Source: Mytilus californianus (Eukaryota). Taken from it: DNA of 64,000 bases. Of this stretch, positions 4,031 to 60,750 are shown piece after piece. The stretch lies in the NCBI RefSeq assembly GCF_021869535.1, contig NW_026262593.1, positions 23,498,001 to 23,562,000 of the forward strand, in the 5' to 3' direction. How positions within the stretch are numbered: position 1 is the first letter of the stretch; every line of letters starts with the position of its first letter. The notes beneath the pieces are model-generated. The model saw only the letters and a program-made list of their open reading frames with translations. It had not been told where the DNA came from and did no database searches. The position numbers were made by a program, and so were the translations under genes.

Positions 4031-5602
4031 TATGTAATTATAAATAGTGAGACTAGATATAACACTGAATAAGTAAACATCAAATAATAAAAATACACTA
4101 CAAATTGTATCAACAGGTCAAATTAACACGAAAGTACGATTTGAGAGTACTTGCAGTTACTGAAAGCTAGTTAAAAGCCAAAAACAATTAATAATAAAAA
4201 AAGCATGCACCAGAGACTAAAATCAACTAAAACACATCCCAGGGATTTAGTGTTTTAACGCCATGGACTGTCAAAGAAGACATGACTTGCGCAATGCCAA
4301 AATAAAAGTATCGACAGGCAGTAGGATAGTTTGGAGTTAACCTGTTTATAAATATGTATAATGTAATATATAGATAGAGTAATCTCTATATAGAAAATGA
4401 ACGTGGATGTGTATTTATACATCCCAAAAAACCGTTTGAAAAGAATACAAATTTAGTTATGTTTTAATTTGCTGATGACAAAATCGATATTTGCGCCAAT
4501 GTAAACTATATTCAAAGATCTAATTACAACATTGGTAAGATAATTCTATGTCATTTGGTCTCTGGTGGAGAGTTGTCTCATTGGCAATTACACCACATCT
4601 CCTTATTTTTATATACAACAGTGATTTCGTGTATCCCGTCAGATAGTAAAGGCTGAGGCTTTGCTTGATGAATGTGTAACTTTAATAGTTTTGTTACAAA
4701 GATGATTTTGAGAACGCTTGTAAAATATTGAAGGGAAATTGTTTACTTGTATATTAGGCTATACAATAATCCTCGCTTGCTCATTTTGGAGCCATAATCA
4801 TTTCCACATGTATACAATTAGACAATTAACTGAAACAACAATGTTTTCTTTTTTAAACATTTCAAGAAAAATCAATAGTTTGTCAGTTCTAGAGTTGTGT
4901 GTTACTGCCTTTTACTATTAGCAAGAGGTACAATAGTATATAGAAAATAACAGTGCCGAGCATTGTCTGCGTTTCGTGCCGAATCCTTATATCGTGTATA
5001 TGTCAAGTCAATACACTATTGTTGTCTTTATACTGCAATCTTAAAGAATGTTATACCCATTGTGTGTTCTCATTTTGCTTTTAAAAATATGTTTAAAACT
5101 GCTGTCATAAGGATCACCCTAGAAATGTTTTGGCGGAGTAAAATTGTTATGTTTCAAAATGTGAAAGCATGCAGTTCATGCTGTCGGTTGAACGAGTGCG
5201 GCAGATGTCAGAATAGAACAATTAGAAATGAATATCAGAAATTATACTTATTAACCTTATCAAATAAAAAGATCAATTAAGAACAAAAGATTTTGTATAA
5301 TTTGTATGGGATAAATGAGTAGTAATGAGTTTATGTCGGTGACAGCCTCGCGTAAGTGTATTCATTTCATTACGAATTTAAAATTGATATGCGTGGTTAT
5401 CACATGAAAATATAGTTTACATTGGCACTAATATCGATTTTGTCATCAGCAAATTAAAACATAACTAAATTTGTATTTTTTTCAAGTGGGATGTATAAAG
5501 ACACACCCACGTTCGTTTAGATCTATAAAGAGGTTAAACTCCTAACTATCCTACTGTCTGTCGATACATTTATTTTGGCATTGCACTAGTCGTGTCTTCT
5601 TT

Positions 5603-5660
5603 GACTGTCCATGACGTTAAAATACTAAATCCCTGGGATGTGTTTTAGTTGATTTTAGTC
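5603..5660 (+). promoter_or_regulatory. SECIS-like element (form 2)
   Basis: AUGAC / 10-bp helix GUUAAAAUAC:GUGUUUUAGU / unpaired AAA / mini-stem AUCCC-GGAU / UGAU; helix I GACUG:UAGUC. Confidence 0.7.
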
Positions 5661-5877
5661 TCTGATGCATGATTTTTTATTATTAATTGTTTTGGCTTTT
5701 AACTAGCTGTCAGTAACTGCGAGTACTCTCAAATCGTACTTTCTTGTTTATTTGACCTGTTGATACTAATTGTATTGCTTTTTGTTATTTAATGTTATTC
5801 AGGGTTATATCTGGTCTATATACCAGCTTTTATAAGTGTTTGGTTTAACTATAAATTTTCACTTCGTACTATGAACA

Positions 5878-6310: not shown

Positions 6311-6445
6311 TTACATTGTGTCATAGGTCAAATTTATTTGTTCAGTGTATGTTCAATGTTGTTAATATGTCCTTTGATTGAATTAAGCTATTTCAGTTGA
6401 TATTTTATAGTGTGTCTTTCTATGTTGTGATGTTACACTATTGTT

Positions 6446-6529
6446 TCAGAAAAAGGGTGAAGGTTTGGTACCATTAAAACGTTTAAACCCGCTGCATTTG
6501 TTTGCACCTGTCCTAAGTCAGGAATCTGA
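6446..6529 (+). ncRNA. Type-P5 twister ribozyme (R1; apparently intact, predicted cleavage U6484^A6485)
   Basis: UCAGA..GGU-GA-AGG-[P1]-UAA-ACC-CGC-UGCA(6)UGCA-CCUG-UCCUAAGU-CAGG-A-aUCUGA; all core pairings satisfied. Confidence 0.85.
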
Positions 6530-7049
6530 TGTTCAGTAGTTGTCGTTTGTTGATGTGGTTCATAAGTGTTTCTCGTTTCTCGTTTTTTATATAGATTAGA
6601 CCGTTGGTTTTCCCGTTTGAATGGTTTTACACTAGTAATTTTTTGGGGCCCTTTATAGCTTACTGTTCGGTGTGAGCCAAGGCTCCGTGTTGAAGACCGT
6701 ACTGTGACCTATAATGGTTTATTTTTATAAATTTTTACTTGGATGGAGAGTTGTCTCATTGGCACTCATACCACATCTTCTTATATCTATCAACACATTT
6801 TGACTACGCAAATAGAACGATTGCAGTATAAATTTAAATATATATCTGGAGTACATAATCAATTTAAAAGATTGACTGAATCTCGCTTTTCTAGTTATAA
6901 AGACGACACACTTGGGTACCTGAACGCCGCAATTCAGAGTATACGTAGCGAATAAACTATTCCATGAATTTATCCAACAATAGTTCATCTTATCAAAACA
7001 CTTCTTTTTACGTTATCTGTCTTGTTGCTCTCTATCCCCTGCTGTTAAT

Positions 7050-7365
7050 GATCTTATATTATTATACTTCATGTACATGTCAAAATGCCAGATTTTGATT
7101 AGTTAATACGATGTAGATAATTTACTCTATCCCATGGCAAATACTCTAAGACGTCATAGTTTATTACTTTAAATTTGAAATTTACCAGACAGTAATAACA
7201 GAACATTCAATATAATATATTAAATAACCCATAGCTGAGAGGGTGATAGAGCAGATTTTTACCCCTCGAAAAGACATTGTCAACCTTGGCTTCGCCTCGG
7301 TTGACAATGTTTCTCTGGGTAACAATCTGCTCTATCACCCTCTCAGCGATGTGTTATTTATATAG
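7050..7365. mobile_element. Non-autonomous element with a long hairpin (7221-7360)
   Basis: ctgagagggtgatagagcagatt...cattgtcaacc-ttggcttcgcctc-ggttgacaatg...aatctgctctatcaccctctcag; upstream GACGTCAT. Confidence 0.7.
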
Positions 7366-14444: not shown

Positions 14445-14795
14445 TAAAAATAAGAAGATGTGGTGTAATTGCCAATGAGACAACTCTTTACTCTAGACCA
14501 AATGACATAGAAGTAAACAGCTATAGGTCACCGCACGGCCTTCAATAATGAGTGAAACCCATACCGCATAGTAAACTAAAAAATGCCTCGAAATGACAAA
14601 TGTAAAACAATTCAAACGAGAAAACCAACGGCCTGGTTTATGTACAAAACAATAAAAGAAAAACAAATATGATATACAGCAACAAACGACAACCACTGAA
14701 TAACAGGCTCCTGACTTGGGACAGGCCTCTTCAGATGGTGGCGGGGTAAACATGTTTATTGGCGCCAAACCCTCCCCCTAACCTGGGACAGTGGT
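14445..14795 (-). mobile_element. 5'-truncated PLE 3' end, subfamily R1b
   Basis: RC of 16810-17165; shared terminus ...cattggcaattacaccacatcttcttatttt. Confidence 0.8.
14704..14785 (-). ncRNA. Type-P5 twister-like motif (one A missing at the cleavage loop)
   Basis: RC CAGGU..GGG-GA-GGG-uuuGGCGCCaauAAACAUGUUU-A-CCC-CGC...CCUG-UCCCAAGU-CAGG-A-GCCUG. Confidence 0.65.
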
Positions 14796-16549: not shown

Positions 16550-17165
16550 TGGATGTTGGATGTGTATTGATTGATAATTTAGTCTTAGATGCATGATTTT
16601 TTATATTAGTTGTTATTGGCTTTGCACTAGCTGTCAGTAACTGCGAGTACTCTCAGATCTGTACTTAGTGTCTTTTTGTTGTAGGGATGTACAAGTACCC
16701 GGTCACGTCCACGTGTTTTTGTTATATGTATTTCTATTTGTATCCATCTGATGAGTTAAGCCTTTTTCAACTGGTTTTTATAGTTCGTTCTTATGTTGTA
16801 CTGTTACACCACTGTACCAGGTTAGCGGGAGGGTTGGAATCCCGCTAACATGTTTAACCCAGCCACATTCTGTATGTATGTGCCTGTCCCAAGTCAGGAG
16901 CCTGTAATTCAGTGGTTGTCGTTTGTTGCTGTGTTACATATTTGTTTTTCGTTCATTTTTTTGTACATTGATTAGGCTGTTAGTTTTCTCGTTTGAATTG
17001 AATTTACATTTGTGATTTCGGCGCCTTTTATAGCTGACTATGCGGTATGGGCTTTGCTCATTGTTGAAGGCCGCACGGTGACTAATAACTGTTAATTTCT
17101 GTGTCATTTGGTCTCTTGTGGAGAGTTGTCGCATTGGCAATCATACCACATCTTCTTTTTTATAT
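16550..17165 (+). mobile_element. PLE 3' UTR repeat, subfamily R1b (intron 4, antisense to host gene)
   Basis: Shares ctagctgtcagtaactgcgagtactctca with R1; contains twister; ends cataccacatcttctttttatatata. Confidence 0.8.
16818..16904 (+). ncRNA. Type-P5 twister-like motif (R1b; near intact)
   Basis: CAGGU..CGG-GA-GGG-[P1]-UAA-CCC-AGC-CACAU..AUGUG-CCUG-UCCCAAGU-CAGG-A-GCCUG. Confidence 0.75.
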
Positions 17166-26593: not shown

Positions 26594-26684
26594 GGCTAGA
26601 GGTATAGGGGGAGGGTTGAGATCTAAAAAACATGTTTAACCCCGCCGCATTTTTGCGCCTGTCCCAAGTCAGGAGCCTCTGGCC
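26594..26684 (+). ncRNA. Type-P5 twister ribozyme (R2; intact core, predicted cleavage U26637^A26638)
   Basis: P5 GGCUAGAGGU:GCCUCUGGCC; P2 GGG:CCC; GA; T1 GGG:CCC; UAA; CGC; P3 CGCA:UGCG; P4 CCUG:CAGG, loop UCCCAAGU. Confidence 0.88.
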
Positions 26685-31071: not shown

Positions 31072-31163
31072 GGCTAGAGGTATAGAGGGAGGATTGAGAT
31101 CTCACAAAACATGTTTAACTCCGCCGCATTTTTGCGCCTGTCCCAAGTCAGGAGCCTCTGGTC
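31072..31163 (+). ncRNA. Twister-like motif (R2; mismatches in P2 and T1)
   Basis: Same layout as 26594 with AGG-GA-GGA and CUC substitutions. Confidence 0.65.
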
Positions 31164-54939: not shown

Positions 54940-55352
54940 TGAGGTTTACTTGTTGTAATGTACAATTATATTATTTATTTATGTATTTCTCAGTGCTGAG
55001 TGTTCTTGCGTTTGTTTGTATTGTATTCCTGTCACGTAGTGTTGTTATCTTAGCGGTATTTTTTACATTGCCATATAAGCGGGAGGTTTGGCTAGCCATA
55101 AAACCAGGTTCAACCCACCTATTTTTTTCTTAAAATGTCCTGTACCAAGTCAGGAATGTGGCAGTTGTTATCAGACAGTCCGTTTCTATGTATGTTGGCG
55201 TTTGCTTTTCTTGTAGTTCAGTGTTTATGTTGTCCGTTGTTTTCCGCTTATAGTTAATGTGTTTCCCTCGGTTAAAGTTTGTTACCCGGATTTGCTTTTA
55301 CTTAATCGAATTATGACTATTGAGCAGCGGTATACTACTGTTGCCTTTATTT
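54940..55352 (+). mobile_element. R4 3' UTR copy
   Basis: Aligns with 680-1060. Confidence 0.8.
55069..55163 (+). ncRNA. Type-P5 twister ribozyme (R4; apparently intact)
   Basis: P5 UGCCAUAU:AUGUGGCA; GG-GA-GGU; CAA-CC-CAC; T1 GGU:ACC; T2 AC:GU; P4 CCUG:CAGG. Confidence 0.78.
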
Positions 55353-55479: not shown

Positions 55480-56320
55480 GATATAAAAAGTAAATTAACA
55501 AAAATACCGAACTCCAAGGACGGAAAGTTCCTTATCTAATTGCAAAATCAATAGCTCAAACACATGAAACGAATGGAAAATAACTGTCATATTCCTGACT
55601 AGGTACAGGCATATCCTTATGTAGAAAATGGTGGTTGAAACCTGTTTTTATAGCTAGCTAAACCTCTCTCTTGTATGACACTACCATATAATTCCATTAC
55701 ATTGACAACAATGTGTGAGCAAAACAAACAGACATAATAGGTGAAAATGTCAAAAATTAGGGTACAGCAGTCACCATTGTGTTATAATCTTAATTATTAT
55801 AATAACAAATAACTATGTCAACAAAGAAAAACAAAATGACATAAATACACTCTATAGACAAAGCACGTTAGCAAAAATGAAATACAAGAATACAAAAAAA
55901 AAATACCATAGCACAATAACACAATAACGGGATGTATGAATACAGAGTCACGTCAAAAGGATATTACTAAAAATGAACTAATCAGTAAAGGTTAAAAATA
56001 TACAAAGACAAATAAAAGGACAATATATACGTAATTAAGATGATAAACAACGTCAGTACCCTGAATATATACTTCAAGACCATCATGTATTATTTGTGAA
56101 GATGATACTGAATATTTATCAACAATGTCTTGGTATCTTCCGATGAACTTTTTTTTAGAAAAAGGACGAGACGTTCTTTAACAAAACTCTTGTTCATTAA
56201 CATTCTGTTCAGAAACTGGTGACGTTTTATAAAGTCTGAGTAACAGTTGCAAGCTCTTTAATACAAAATAAGTTGGGAAATGTATATGCAGGTGAAGTTG
56301 GTATATTGCTCCTTAGGAGG
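55480..56320 (-). mobile_element. 5'-truncated Penelope-like copy: RT tail (56320-56060) plus 3' UTR, subfamily R3
   Basis: RC SNIPTSPAY..YISQLI..RACNCYSDFIKRHQFL...FIGRYQDIVDKYSVSSSQIIHDGL with frameshifts, followed by a twister-like motif. Confidence 0.82.
55585..55680 (-). ncRNA. Twister-like motif (R3; degenerate P2)
   Basis: P5 UGUCAUA:UAUGACA (compensatory vs R4); GA-GGU with L4 UACCUAGU; CCUG:CAGG. Confidence 0.6.
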
Positions 56321-58189: not shown

Positions 58190-58385
58190 TCTATCTTGCG
58201 TTTTCACATTTTCCTGATTTGTTGCCTGGAACTCTTTGCTTTTACGAGTGTTTGCCTTTTCAAGGTTTGTACTTTATTTAGCCTATATACCTGTTTTGTT
58301 TCGAGCATCACTGATGAGTCTGTAGTAGACGAAACGCGCGTCTGGCTTTCAAAATTTGAATCCTGGCATCTATGTTGTGTTTGAG
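58190..58385 (+). mobile_element. Hammerhead retrozyme copy
   Basis: Homologous to 63630-63830(-) and 49700-49860. Confidence 0.75.
58296..58365 (+). ncRNA. Type I hammerhead ribozyme (core intact, cleavage triplet mutated)
   Basis: CUGAUGA(58311)-GUCU guagu AGAC-GAAA-CGC..GC-UUU; sister copies have GUA at the triplet. Confidence 0.85.
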
Positions 58386-59616
58386 GGTATTTGCTTTTAC
58401 GCACGTTTGCCTTCTAATTTTCAAATCATTAAATATAAATATCGAAAAGGTGGAATATATCAAAAATATTACTTTATACATGTACATTTGAGCGTCGGAA
58501 AGAAAGCAAAAACTTGAACATTTGAAAGCCATGGGTGGATTAAAAATAAGACACGTTATGAGTTCTATATGACCAATGGAACCTGCAACGAATGACCTAA
58601 TTGATATAAGATGTGGTATGAGTGCAAATGAGACAACTCTCCATCCAAGTCACAATTTGTAAAAGTAAACCATTATAGGTCAAAGTACGGTCTTCCATAC
58701 GAAGCCTTGGCTCACACCGAACGGCAAGCTATAAAGGGCCCCAAAAATGACTAGTGTAAAACCAGCAAAATAGGAAAACCAACGGTCTAATCTATATAAA
58801 AACGAGAAACGAGCAACACTTATGAACCACATCAACAAACGACAACCAATGAACAACAGGTTCTTGAATTAAGACAAGTGCAAACAAATGCAGCGGGTTT
58901 AAACGTTTTAACAGGCGCCAAACCTTCACCCTAACCTGAAATAATAGTGTAACATCACAACATAGAAAGACACACTATAAAATATCAATTGAAATGGCTT
59001 TACTCAATCAAAGGACATATTAACAAAAACAATAAAATATACACTGAACGAATGTATTTGATCTATGACACAATGTAAATAAAAAATTAATAAAAAAAAA
59101 TAGGGGGTGAGATGTAAAACAATATCTGAAAGACAACTTCAACCTTGGACAAAATGCCGTTAAATAAAATAACGTACACATTAAATAAAAATAATTTTGT
59201 TGTAAGGAGGACATGGAGTACGGAAATATTTTTTACAAAATAAATTTGTTGTTCATAGTACGAGAACAGAAGTGAAAATTTATCGTCATACTAACTTATC
59301 AAAGGTGGTATATATTAAAAATAGTGAGACGAGATATAACACAAAATAAGTTAACATTAAATAACAAAAATGCATTACAATTGTATCAACAGGTCAAATT
59401 AACACGAAAGTACGATTTGAGAGTACTCGCAGATACTGAAAGCTAGTTAAAAGCCAAAAACAATTAATAATAAAAAGCATGCATTACCTGTGTATTATAT
59501 GACGCAGGTTTCTTCAAAAGCGATGATTTTCTAAAAATGTTTGAAATTTCACAGTGATATCATACTTTAACTTTGTTTAATATAAGTTATCTACGGATAT
59601 GAACGTAGATAACGAA

Positions 59617-60289: not shown

Positions 60290-60750
60290 TTCAGGTGTCA
60301 CAGGTCAAATTTATTCGTTCATTGTGTGTTAATTTACGTTTTTTTATTGAGTTAAGCCTTCCAATTGATATTTTACAGTGTGTTTTTCTATGTTGTGATG
60401 TTATGCTATTGATTCAGAAAAGGGAGAAGGTTTGGTACCATTAAAACGTTTAATCCCGCTGCAAATGTTTGCACCTGTCCTAAGTCAAGAATCTGATTAC
60501 AGTAGTTGTCGTCTGTTTATGTAGTTCATACGTGTTTCTCGTTTTTATATAGATTAGACCGTTAGTTTTTCCGTTTAAATGATTTTACACTAGTAATTTT
60601 TTGGGGCCCTTTATAGCTTGCTGTTCGGTGTGAGCCATTGCTCCGTGTTGAAGGCCGTACCTTCACCTATAATGGTTTACTTTTATAAATTGTAACTTGG
60701 ATGGAGAGTTGTCTCATTGGCACTCATACCACATCTTCCTATATCTATTA
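60290..60750 (+). mobile_element. R1 3' end copy with twister-like motif at 60414-60496 (one P4 mismatch)
   Basis: GGA-GA-AGG..UAA-UCC-CGC..CCUG-UCCUAAGU-CAAG-A. Confidence 0.8.

Follow-up and report, generated by a model that had tools for sequence, protein, structure and literature searches.

Two covarying palindromes in the place of P1 in a twister-like motif of a putative Penelope-like retroelement tail in Mytilus californianus

The twister-like motif and the repeat that carries it

The stretch of DNA analysed here, called the window below, covers 64,000 nucleotides of the Mytilus californianus genome. On its forward strand, a type-P5 twister-like motif extends from 6437 to 6540, i.e., from the outer 5′ strand to the outer 3′ strand of P5, whose predicted pairing joins 6437-6443 with 6534-6540 and 6446-6450 with 6525-6529. 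The elements of this copy, which we call the index copy, follow each other in the P5-open order. The 5′ strand of P5 is followed by the 3′ strand of P2 (GGGU, 6455-6458), read in the sequence as the complement of ACCC at 6487-6490, and by the 3′ strand of L1 (GAAGG, 6459-6463), which contains the T1 triplet (A6461 G6462 G6463; partner C6512 C6513 U6514 in loop L4). Read directly, 6460-6484 is AAGG UU UGGUACCA UUA AAACGUUU: palindrome 1 (Pal1, 6466-6473) begins 2 nt 3′ of T1, after UU, and is separated by UUA from palindrome 2 (Pal2, 6477-6484). Both are perfect 8-nt palindromes, and together they occupy the gap that separates pseudoknot T1 from the predicted scissile bond U6484|A6485. The last base of Pal2 is N-1, and its inner AACGUU ends at N-2, the position where a P1 strand would end. 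After the scissile bond come A6485 and a further A, the 5′ strand of P2 with the T2 strand (ACCC and GC, 6487-6492, from sequence and alignment), a predicted P3 hairpin (GCA-loop-UGC, 6494-6505), the P4 hairpin (CCUG/CAGG, 6507-6522), whose 8-nt loop L4, UCCUAAGU, matches the twister consensus loop UCcCAAGC, and finally the 3′ strand of P5. The register of the scissile bond is that of the Rfam Twister-P5 consensus (U|AA, a 4-nt P2, then GC), taken from alignments of sister copies.

Rfam scans of the window found no twister at gathering thresholds, nor in the whole window at E ≤ 10, and a short-range scan of the index copy gave no Twister-P5 match. Short-range scans elsewhere in the window identified Twister-P5 (RF02684, clan CL00120) at 26607-26673 with 23.1 bits and at 31088-31152 with 23.7 bits, both below the gathering score of 37.6. 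All conserved core blocks (GGGG, GAGGG, UAA, CCCC, GC, and CCUG-UCCCAAGU-CAGG) align in the copy at 26607-26673; in the one at 31088, the GAGGG block is mutated. In both alignments, 20-21 nt are inserted at the P1 region, where no more than two pairs, of non-standard type, are drawn, and P3 is a further insertion. Intact copies score below the threshold because these two inserts go unmatched.

The helices of the motif vary between lineages on both of their sides. P2 is GGGU/ACCC in the index copy, GGGA/UCCC in its sisters, and GGGG/CCCC in others, so that the first pair changes on both strands. For T1, GAGGG is found with UCCC, GAAGG with UCCU (the index sub-family), and GAGGU with UACC, the register of this last variant being anchored on Pal1 and less certain. 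P5 also shows two-sided changes (CCACUG..CCAGG with CCUG..CAGUGG; GGCUAGAGG with CCUCUGGCC; GGCCAAUU with AAUUGGCC), and the P3 stem varies from GCA/UGC to ACAU/AUGU. P4 with its loop, CCUG-UCC(C/U)AAGU-CAGG, occurs 16 times in the window and carries a twister-type loop of the UCCCAAGC kind. T2 has GC after P2 in all lineages, and the end of L4 is GU instead of GC, which gives one G-C and one G.U pair and no covariation. At the scissile site, most lineages have U|AA before the 4-nt P2, and one has C|AA. Hence, the P2 helix, the P4 hairpin with its conserved loop, the T1 pseudoknot, and the scissile U|A of type-P5 twisters are all present, while a P1 helix in cis and an Rfam score at gathering level are absent. 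Judged from these primary-sequence features, the motif is a twister variant by fold, with the predicted core present and P1 missing in cis.

Several other copies in the window carry palindromes at the same place. A sister copy on the forward strand has the same two palindromes (60433-60440 and 60444-60451). Also on the forward strand lie UGAGAUCUCA and AAACAUGUUU (31095-31104 and 31107-31116, in the copy that reaches 23.7 bits), AGAUCU, a decayed GAGAUCUC, with AAACAUGUUU (26619-26637, in the copy with the perfect twister core), and UGGCUAGCCA (55089-55098) followed by the odd palindrome AACC-A-GGUU (whole segment, 55089-55110). The reverse strand carries UUGGCGCCAA and UAAACAUGUUUA (14759-14768 and 14747-14758) and UAGCUAGCUA (55651-55660). 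An earlier note on this DNA had named a series of copies with palindromes between T1 and the cleavage loop and had proposed that two such words replace a conventional P1; sequence reading confirmed every one of these copies, and the replacement of P1 agrees with the unpaired insert of the Rfam alignments. We add the odd palindrome AACC-A-GGUU, missing from that list, which takes the second place in the sub-family with the UACCAAGU loop (copies at 794 and 55089).

The motif belongs to an abundant repeat. Its 17-mer core CCTGTCCYAAGTCAGGA has 16 copies in the window for 0.02 expected, and an exact 19-mer core occurs 22,012 times in the 1.65-Gb genome. The repeat unit that holds the index copy ends at 6772-6790 (forward strand) with the 3′ terminus CACATCTTCTTATATCTAT, about 265 nt downstream of the motif, and beyond this terminus the sequences of the copies part, with flanks that are often TA-rich. 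A SECIS-like element precedes the motif on the same strand (5601-5662; SECIS_1, 32.9 bits for a gathering score of 35). The same order, SECIS then twister, is found in three metagenome contigs (L062, L071, and L102), and the SECIS_1 scores of the window and of these contigs range from 28 to 33 bits (gathering score, 35). In L102, the SECIS closely follows a 590-aa ORF, whose features lie nearest to clusters with HTH_animal, DUF8422, RVT_1, and GIY-YIG (scores, 0.96-0.98), and the upstream ORFs of L071 and L102 gave no match in Pfam. Most copies are 5′-truncated dead tails with no ORF nearby, and none of those in the window bears an ORF. For the selenoprotein-coding Naiad PLEs described in clams, very high copy numbers have been reported from bivalves (Craig et al. 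2021, PMC8557442). From the order of these features, the motif fits an interspersed repeat in the tail of a SECIS-bearing, Naiad-type Penelope-like retroelement (PLE). Naiads were reported to lack hammerhead ribozymes, and twister goes unmentioned there (PMC8557442). Our searches of the literature on twister in Mytilus, molluscs, Penelope-like or Naiad elements found no description of the motif.

Two further observations concern related arrangements. A differently permuted twister (AACCAAGCC ... CCUGUCCCAAGUCAGGAUAAAUUGGGAGGGUUGC...), which has the same L4 loop and not the two palindromes, is present in many metagenome contigs associated with worms or invertebrates (e.g., loci L044, L045, L061, L073, and L085). 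In one sub-family, seen at 16840-16870 of the window and at many other loci (e.g., L016 and L024), the P5 5′ strand (CCACUGUCCCAGGUUAGG) and the P4/L4 hairpin (CCUGUCCCAAGUCAGG) are similar in sequence, possibly as the result of an internal duplication.

Palindrome enrichment, variants, and covariation

We parsed 49 copies of the motif, from the window, from 34 genomic loci, and from metagenome contigs. In the first 16 nt after T1, a palindrome of at least 6 nt is present in 78% of these copies and one of at least 8 nt in 59%, vs 21% and 5.5% in the controls (shuffles and random genomic 16-mers). At the second site, a palindrome of at least 8 nt is present in 51% of the copies vs 4.5-5% in the controls.

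The letters of these palindromes differ widely between lineages, as pattern tallies over the genome show, the first 100 matches listed having been inspected by eye. At least ten variants of Pal1 are multi-copy in this genome, i.e., GGGAUCCC, GGGCGCCC, GAGCGCUC, GAGAUCUC (extended up to UUGAGAUCUCAA), UGGCGCCA, GGCGCC, GGCGCGCC, UGGUACCA, GGCUAGCC, GGCAUGCC, and UAGCUAGCUA. In metagenome contigs, the index sub-family occurs in a UGGUACCA version and, in otherwise near-identical copies, in a UGGGCCCA and a UGGAUCCA version, each observed once. With GGCGCC, all four self-complementary centre dinucleotides therefore occur at Pal1, the GC and AU centres being single observations.

The covariation of Pal1 was measured on the 12 nt after the T1 triplet in 39 distinct copies aligned with MAFFT, in a register that was not fitted to the palindromes, and the nested pairs 4-11, 5-10, 6-9, and 7-8 were tested. 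The cells of these pairs are complementary in 82.7% of cases, vs 58.8 ± 3.0% in shuffles (none of 500 reaches the observed value) and 37-52% in slid registers. The covariation score is 0.716 vs 0.289 in shuffles (again 0 of 500) and 0.10-0.22 in slid registers. All four pairs show changes on both sides, including the adjacent columns 7-8 (AU 19, GC 8, UA 6, and CG 1) and columns 6-9 (GC 16 and CG 11). These cells count sequences and not events, so that the list of lineage variants is the better measure of independent changes. The claim of the earlier note that the words vary and stay palindromic is thus upheld by the lineage variants, by the enrichment over controls, and by the covariation of Pal1.

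A neutral baseline comes from the index sub-family itself, which has 5,457 genomic copies with exact flanks; among the matches listed, the centre is UA in 99 of 100. The first centre base is changed in 60 copies, which are AA, CA, and GA single mutants with one GU, and none of these 60 centre mutants has a double change that restores the palindrome.

Pal2 behaves in a similar manner. In other lineages, it is AAACAUGUUU, AAACUAGUUU, or AACC-A-GGUU; the centres CAUG, CUAG, and CG keep the symmetry, and close lineages differ only by AU to UA. The UACC-loop family has the odd form AACC-A-GGUU, for which related contigs show the covarying AAUC-U-GAUU. Non-palindromic centres (CAAG, CGAG, and CUUG) occur in a few small lineages. 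The spacing of the palindromes to the core is fixed, with UU after T1 and the end of Pal2 at N-2 or N-1. To judge from all these comparisons, evolution has kept both stretches self-complementary down to their central bases.

Pairing between two copies

Three levels of symmetry can be considered: that of the DNA, that of a hairpin within one RNA, and that of a duplex between two RNAs. A palindrome is symmetric on both strands, and the sequence by itself does not separate RNA from DNA; the symmetry could thus serve a dimeric protein or a cruciform, or be a mutational by-product or a chance product. We consider these DNA-level explanations very improbable. At least 12 different sequences share the symmetry and nothing else, which favours pairing of nucleic acids over a sequence-specific protein site on DNA. 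Chance is excluded by the enrichment and covariation tests, and neutral decay yields single mutants, as in the baseline above, and not symmetric double changes.

Within one RNA, each palindrome might be a small cis hairpin, two mini stem-loops replacing P1 in a motif that works as a monomer. The fold can be drawn: a palindrome can form a stem of 2-3 bp with a 4-nt loop, and the odd forms of Pal2 (AACC-A-GGUU and AAUC-U-GAUU) suit a 3-bp stem with a triloop. However, the would-be loop bases are precisely those that covary, with AU, GC, UA, and CG in adjacent positions and GC and CG in the next layer. These two innermost pairs are impossible within a single strand, and their covariation therefore favours a duplex of two copies over mini-hairpins. 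The predicted folding energies point the same way. The P1 segment alone has a median MFE of -0.3 kcal/mol and is essentially unstructured, while homodimer formation adds stability, with a median change of -13 kcal/mol (-13 to -20 in intact lineages) vs -6.2 ± 3 for shuffles. RNAcofold gives these values for a single duplex in each fold, since the two duplexes combined would be a pseudoknot. The monomer near 0 and the homodimer with a gain of about 13 kcal/mol also bear out the expectation of the earlier note that loop-less palindromes are poor hairpins and good intermolecular pairers. Hence, we find the mini-hairpin reading hard to credit.

A conventional P1 in cis was also looked for. No conserved closing helix was found, the Rfam insert being unpaired and the monomer energy near zero. 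In the UACCAAGU-loop sub-family, a weak 5-pair helix, UUUGG/CCAGG, can be drawn in cis, which speaks for a monomer; it is not conserved in related sequences (L060, L077, and L079). Folds of the whole motif also contain a rival helix within the monomer, GGGUU.../...AACCC, in which the scissile dinucleotide would be buried; a pseudoknot-free fold cannot weigh it against T1.

Selected pairing between two copies is, by contrast with the cis hairpins, well supported by the covariation that reaches the innermost pairs, by the absence of neutral double mutants, and by the fold energies, and two RNA copies probably pair at the palindromes. The explanation that we favour, and to which we give about an even chance in its full form, is that the palindromes are selected RNA-RNA self-pairing elements within the type-P5 twister motif of a Naiad-type PLE 3′ tail. 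Each palindrome could pair into a helix only with its counterpart in a second copy, located either on another RNA molecule or further along the same tandem (pseudo-LTR) transcript. If the dimer is symmetric, the duplex of Pal2 would stand in the place of P1 and abut each predicted scissile bond at N-2, and the Pal1 duplex, following the UU after T1, would lie beside it, both helices together bridging the two cores. This two-helix geometry is a model that we infer. Against the explanation as a whole stand the Rfam scores below threshold, the sub-family with the odd Pal2, whose duplex would hold a central mismatch, and the small lineages with non-palindromic Pal2 centres. The many variants of Pal1 may moreover make the pairing specific to each sub-family.

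The motif had been read in the earlier note as a possible dimer-dependent twister. The structural part of that reading is supported by the three lines of evidence just named; its functional part, that cleavage would be tuned by or depend on pairing of two copies, is a reasonable hypothesis.

Cleavage, retroelement dimerisation, and known systems

Copies of the motif are transcribed on both strands, as seen in two raw-read RNA runs and two RNA contig sets. In the same four datasets, molecule ends do not accumulate at the predicted bonds 55111|55112 and 60451|60452. This lends no support to cleavage and does not refute it, because most of the copies sit as dead tails within other transcripts, the reads come from both strands, and ends of this kind are poorly recovered in standard libraries. 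The result is compatible with inactive copies, with cleavage gated by dimerisation, or with insensitive libraries.

The genome offers another trace. The 3′ terminus TATATCTAT is followed by CCCGCC within 12 nt at 106 genomic places, and about 80 of these 106 junctions read TATATCTAT-U-AACCCCGCC, starting 1 nt before the predicted A+1, with 0 at neighbouring registers. In DNA letters, the TATATCTAT-T-AACCCCGCC junctions include tandem arrays with periods of about 312, 1,050, and 1,340 nt; in this species' own genome assembly (G000), outside the window, they are found for instance at C99:75836642-75853463, C121:51001740-51004440, and C120:809033-809363. They are seen in AACCCCGCC-type copies only, and the index sub-family (CCCGCUGCA type) has no such junction between 3′ terminus and cleavage site. 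The junctions hint at template jumping from an RNA with its 5′ end at the cleavage site, which would leave such a join; the extra U is not accounted for in this way. They share much sequence and may therefore stem from few events. The arrays could have been left by RNA templates that were cleaved or circular, or they could be a single composite that was amplified. Points of 5′ truncation were also tried as a test of cleavage (patterns with two mismatches; counts of 23, 11, 50, and 20) and were dropped, because 1-nt deletions and the TA-rich target both confound the counts. Separately, at one locus (L016, minus strand; about 884 when oriented), a copy begins exactly at AACCCC, directly after a CGAGTT-type satellite, and its 5′ truncation therefore falls at the predicted A+1.

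It could be argued that the motif is a decayed or inactive relic of a twister that the retroelement carries along, the palindromes having an unrelated function in RNA or cDNA, or none. The Rfam scores below threshold, the RNA reads devoid of an end signature, and the predominance of dead tails far from any ORF would agree with such a relic. Yet the core nucleotides of intact copies match the twister consensus exactly, P2, T1, and P5 change on two sides between lineages, and the roughly 80 junctions fall 1 nt from the predicted scissile bond and at no neighbouring register. We judge it unlikely that the motif is such a relic.

The pairing itself may also serve another end. Retroviral dimer-initiation sites are palindromic kissing loops that vary between lineages and remain self-complementary. 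The mussel palindromes resemble them as short, variable palindromes for homotypic RNA pairing in a retroelement, and differ in that they lie outside a hairpin loop, embedded in a ribozyme core. By this comparison, the palindromes could be dimerisation signals of the retroelement RNA for reverse transcription, cleavage being independent of them; they would promote template switching, formation of tandems or pseudo-LTRs, or co-packaging, and would sit at the dispensable position of P1 because the ribozyme tolerates any sequence there. What we observe is indeed selection for intermolecular self-pairing, with no link to catalysis, and the RNA reads bear no sign of efficient cleavage. Moreover, the junctions and tandem arrays show template jumps or unit-length joining, and PLE insertions are typically partial tandems (PMC8557442). 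Nevertheless, in every lineage the palindromes lie at fixed, short distances from T1 and from the scissile bond, as is expected of a structural part of the ribozyme, whereas a pure dimer-linkage site could sit anywhere in the tail. We give this alternative a rather low probability, and a role in dimerisation and a role in the ribozyme are not mutually exclusive.

Under the preferred reading, in which the palindromes are self-pairing elements of the ribozyme motif, the pairing may promote or gate self-cleavage, by analogy with the dimeric hammerheads of canonical PLEs. In these hammerheads, helix III is minimal and its loop is a palindrome, and they are weakly active as dimers (Cervera and de la Peña 2014, PMC4209133); their action as dimers is also attributed to Lünse et al. 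2016 (PMC5785218) in the paper that cites it (PMC6765202). On these sources, the second one through its citation, the analogy drawn in the earlier note is a real one. By mechanism, this minimal hammerhead is the closest known system, as far as the analogy carries. As in the dimer-active hammerheads of PLEs and metazoan retrozymes, one helix of the predicted mussel ribozyme is replaced by a self-complementary sequence, conserved as a palindrome and variable in its letters, that two copies would complete. Extreme sequence variability within one genome, with compensatory changes, is likewise common to both. The differences are the ribozyme class, twister here; the number of palindromes, two and not one short palindromic loop; the nature of the evidence, the mussel motif being known from sequence alone; and the PLE clade, Naiads being reported as hammerhead-free (PMC8557442).

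Compared with twister type P5 (RF02684), the motif shares P2, the optional P3, P4 with UCCCAAGU, the GAGGG of L1, U|AA, the GC of T2, and the P5-open order. It lacks the P1 hairpin in cis, has two covarying palindromes of 6-12 nt instead, scores below the gathering threshold, and lies in a eukaryotic retroelement tail with about 10^4-10^5 copies per genome. Compared with the published Naiads (PMC8557442), it shares the extreme abundance in a bivalve-type genome, the SECIS-like element upstream of the motif, a candidate PLE-like RT ORF further upstream in L102, and the TA-rich 3′ flanks; unlike them, it carries a putative ribozyme, and its copies in the window are truncated tails without an ORF.

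A bolder version can be proposed, which we regard as possible but doubtful: an obligately dimeric natural twister, in which P1 would exist only in trans through the palindromes, the variants of Pal1 would act as addresses of the sub-families, and the whole would be convergent with the hammerheads. P1 is dispensable for some twisters, and therefore a P1 in trans need not control catalysis. Twisters are known as compact monomeric ribozymes, and a natural one with its closing helix formed only between molecules would, if true, be a new regulatory architecture for the class. Naiads, the most abundant PLEs of bivalves and published without a ribozyme, would then gain one, and the logic of the dimer would have arisen twice in one order of retroelements, through two ribozyme folds. 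The dozen or more natural covarying palindromes form a ready panel of matched and mismatched partners that is accessible with short transcripts.

Elsewhere in the window, three further features were observed. The forward strand carries, at 58308-58345, a hammerhead-like motif of type I whose core (CUGAUGAGUC...GACGAAACGCGCGUC) is perfect (Hammerhead_1, 25.8 bits for a gathering score of 34). The region 58553-58930 has a very high RNA depth, of hundreds to thousands; thousands of RNA reads end abruptly at 58608, and one contig joint leads 109 nt back, from 58716 to 58608. These data suggest a short unit, tandem or circular, that is highly expressed and lies about 260 nt away from the hammerhead-like motif. 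Finally, a long perfect inverted repeat at 7234-7347, which obtains 51 bits for plant MIR7504 (gathering score, 83), is probably a MITE-like hairpin and not a microRNA gene.
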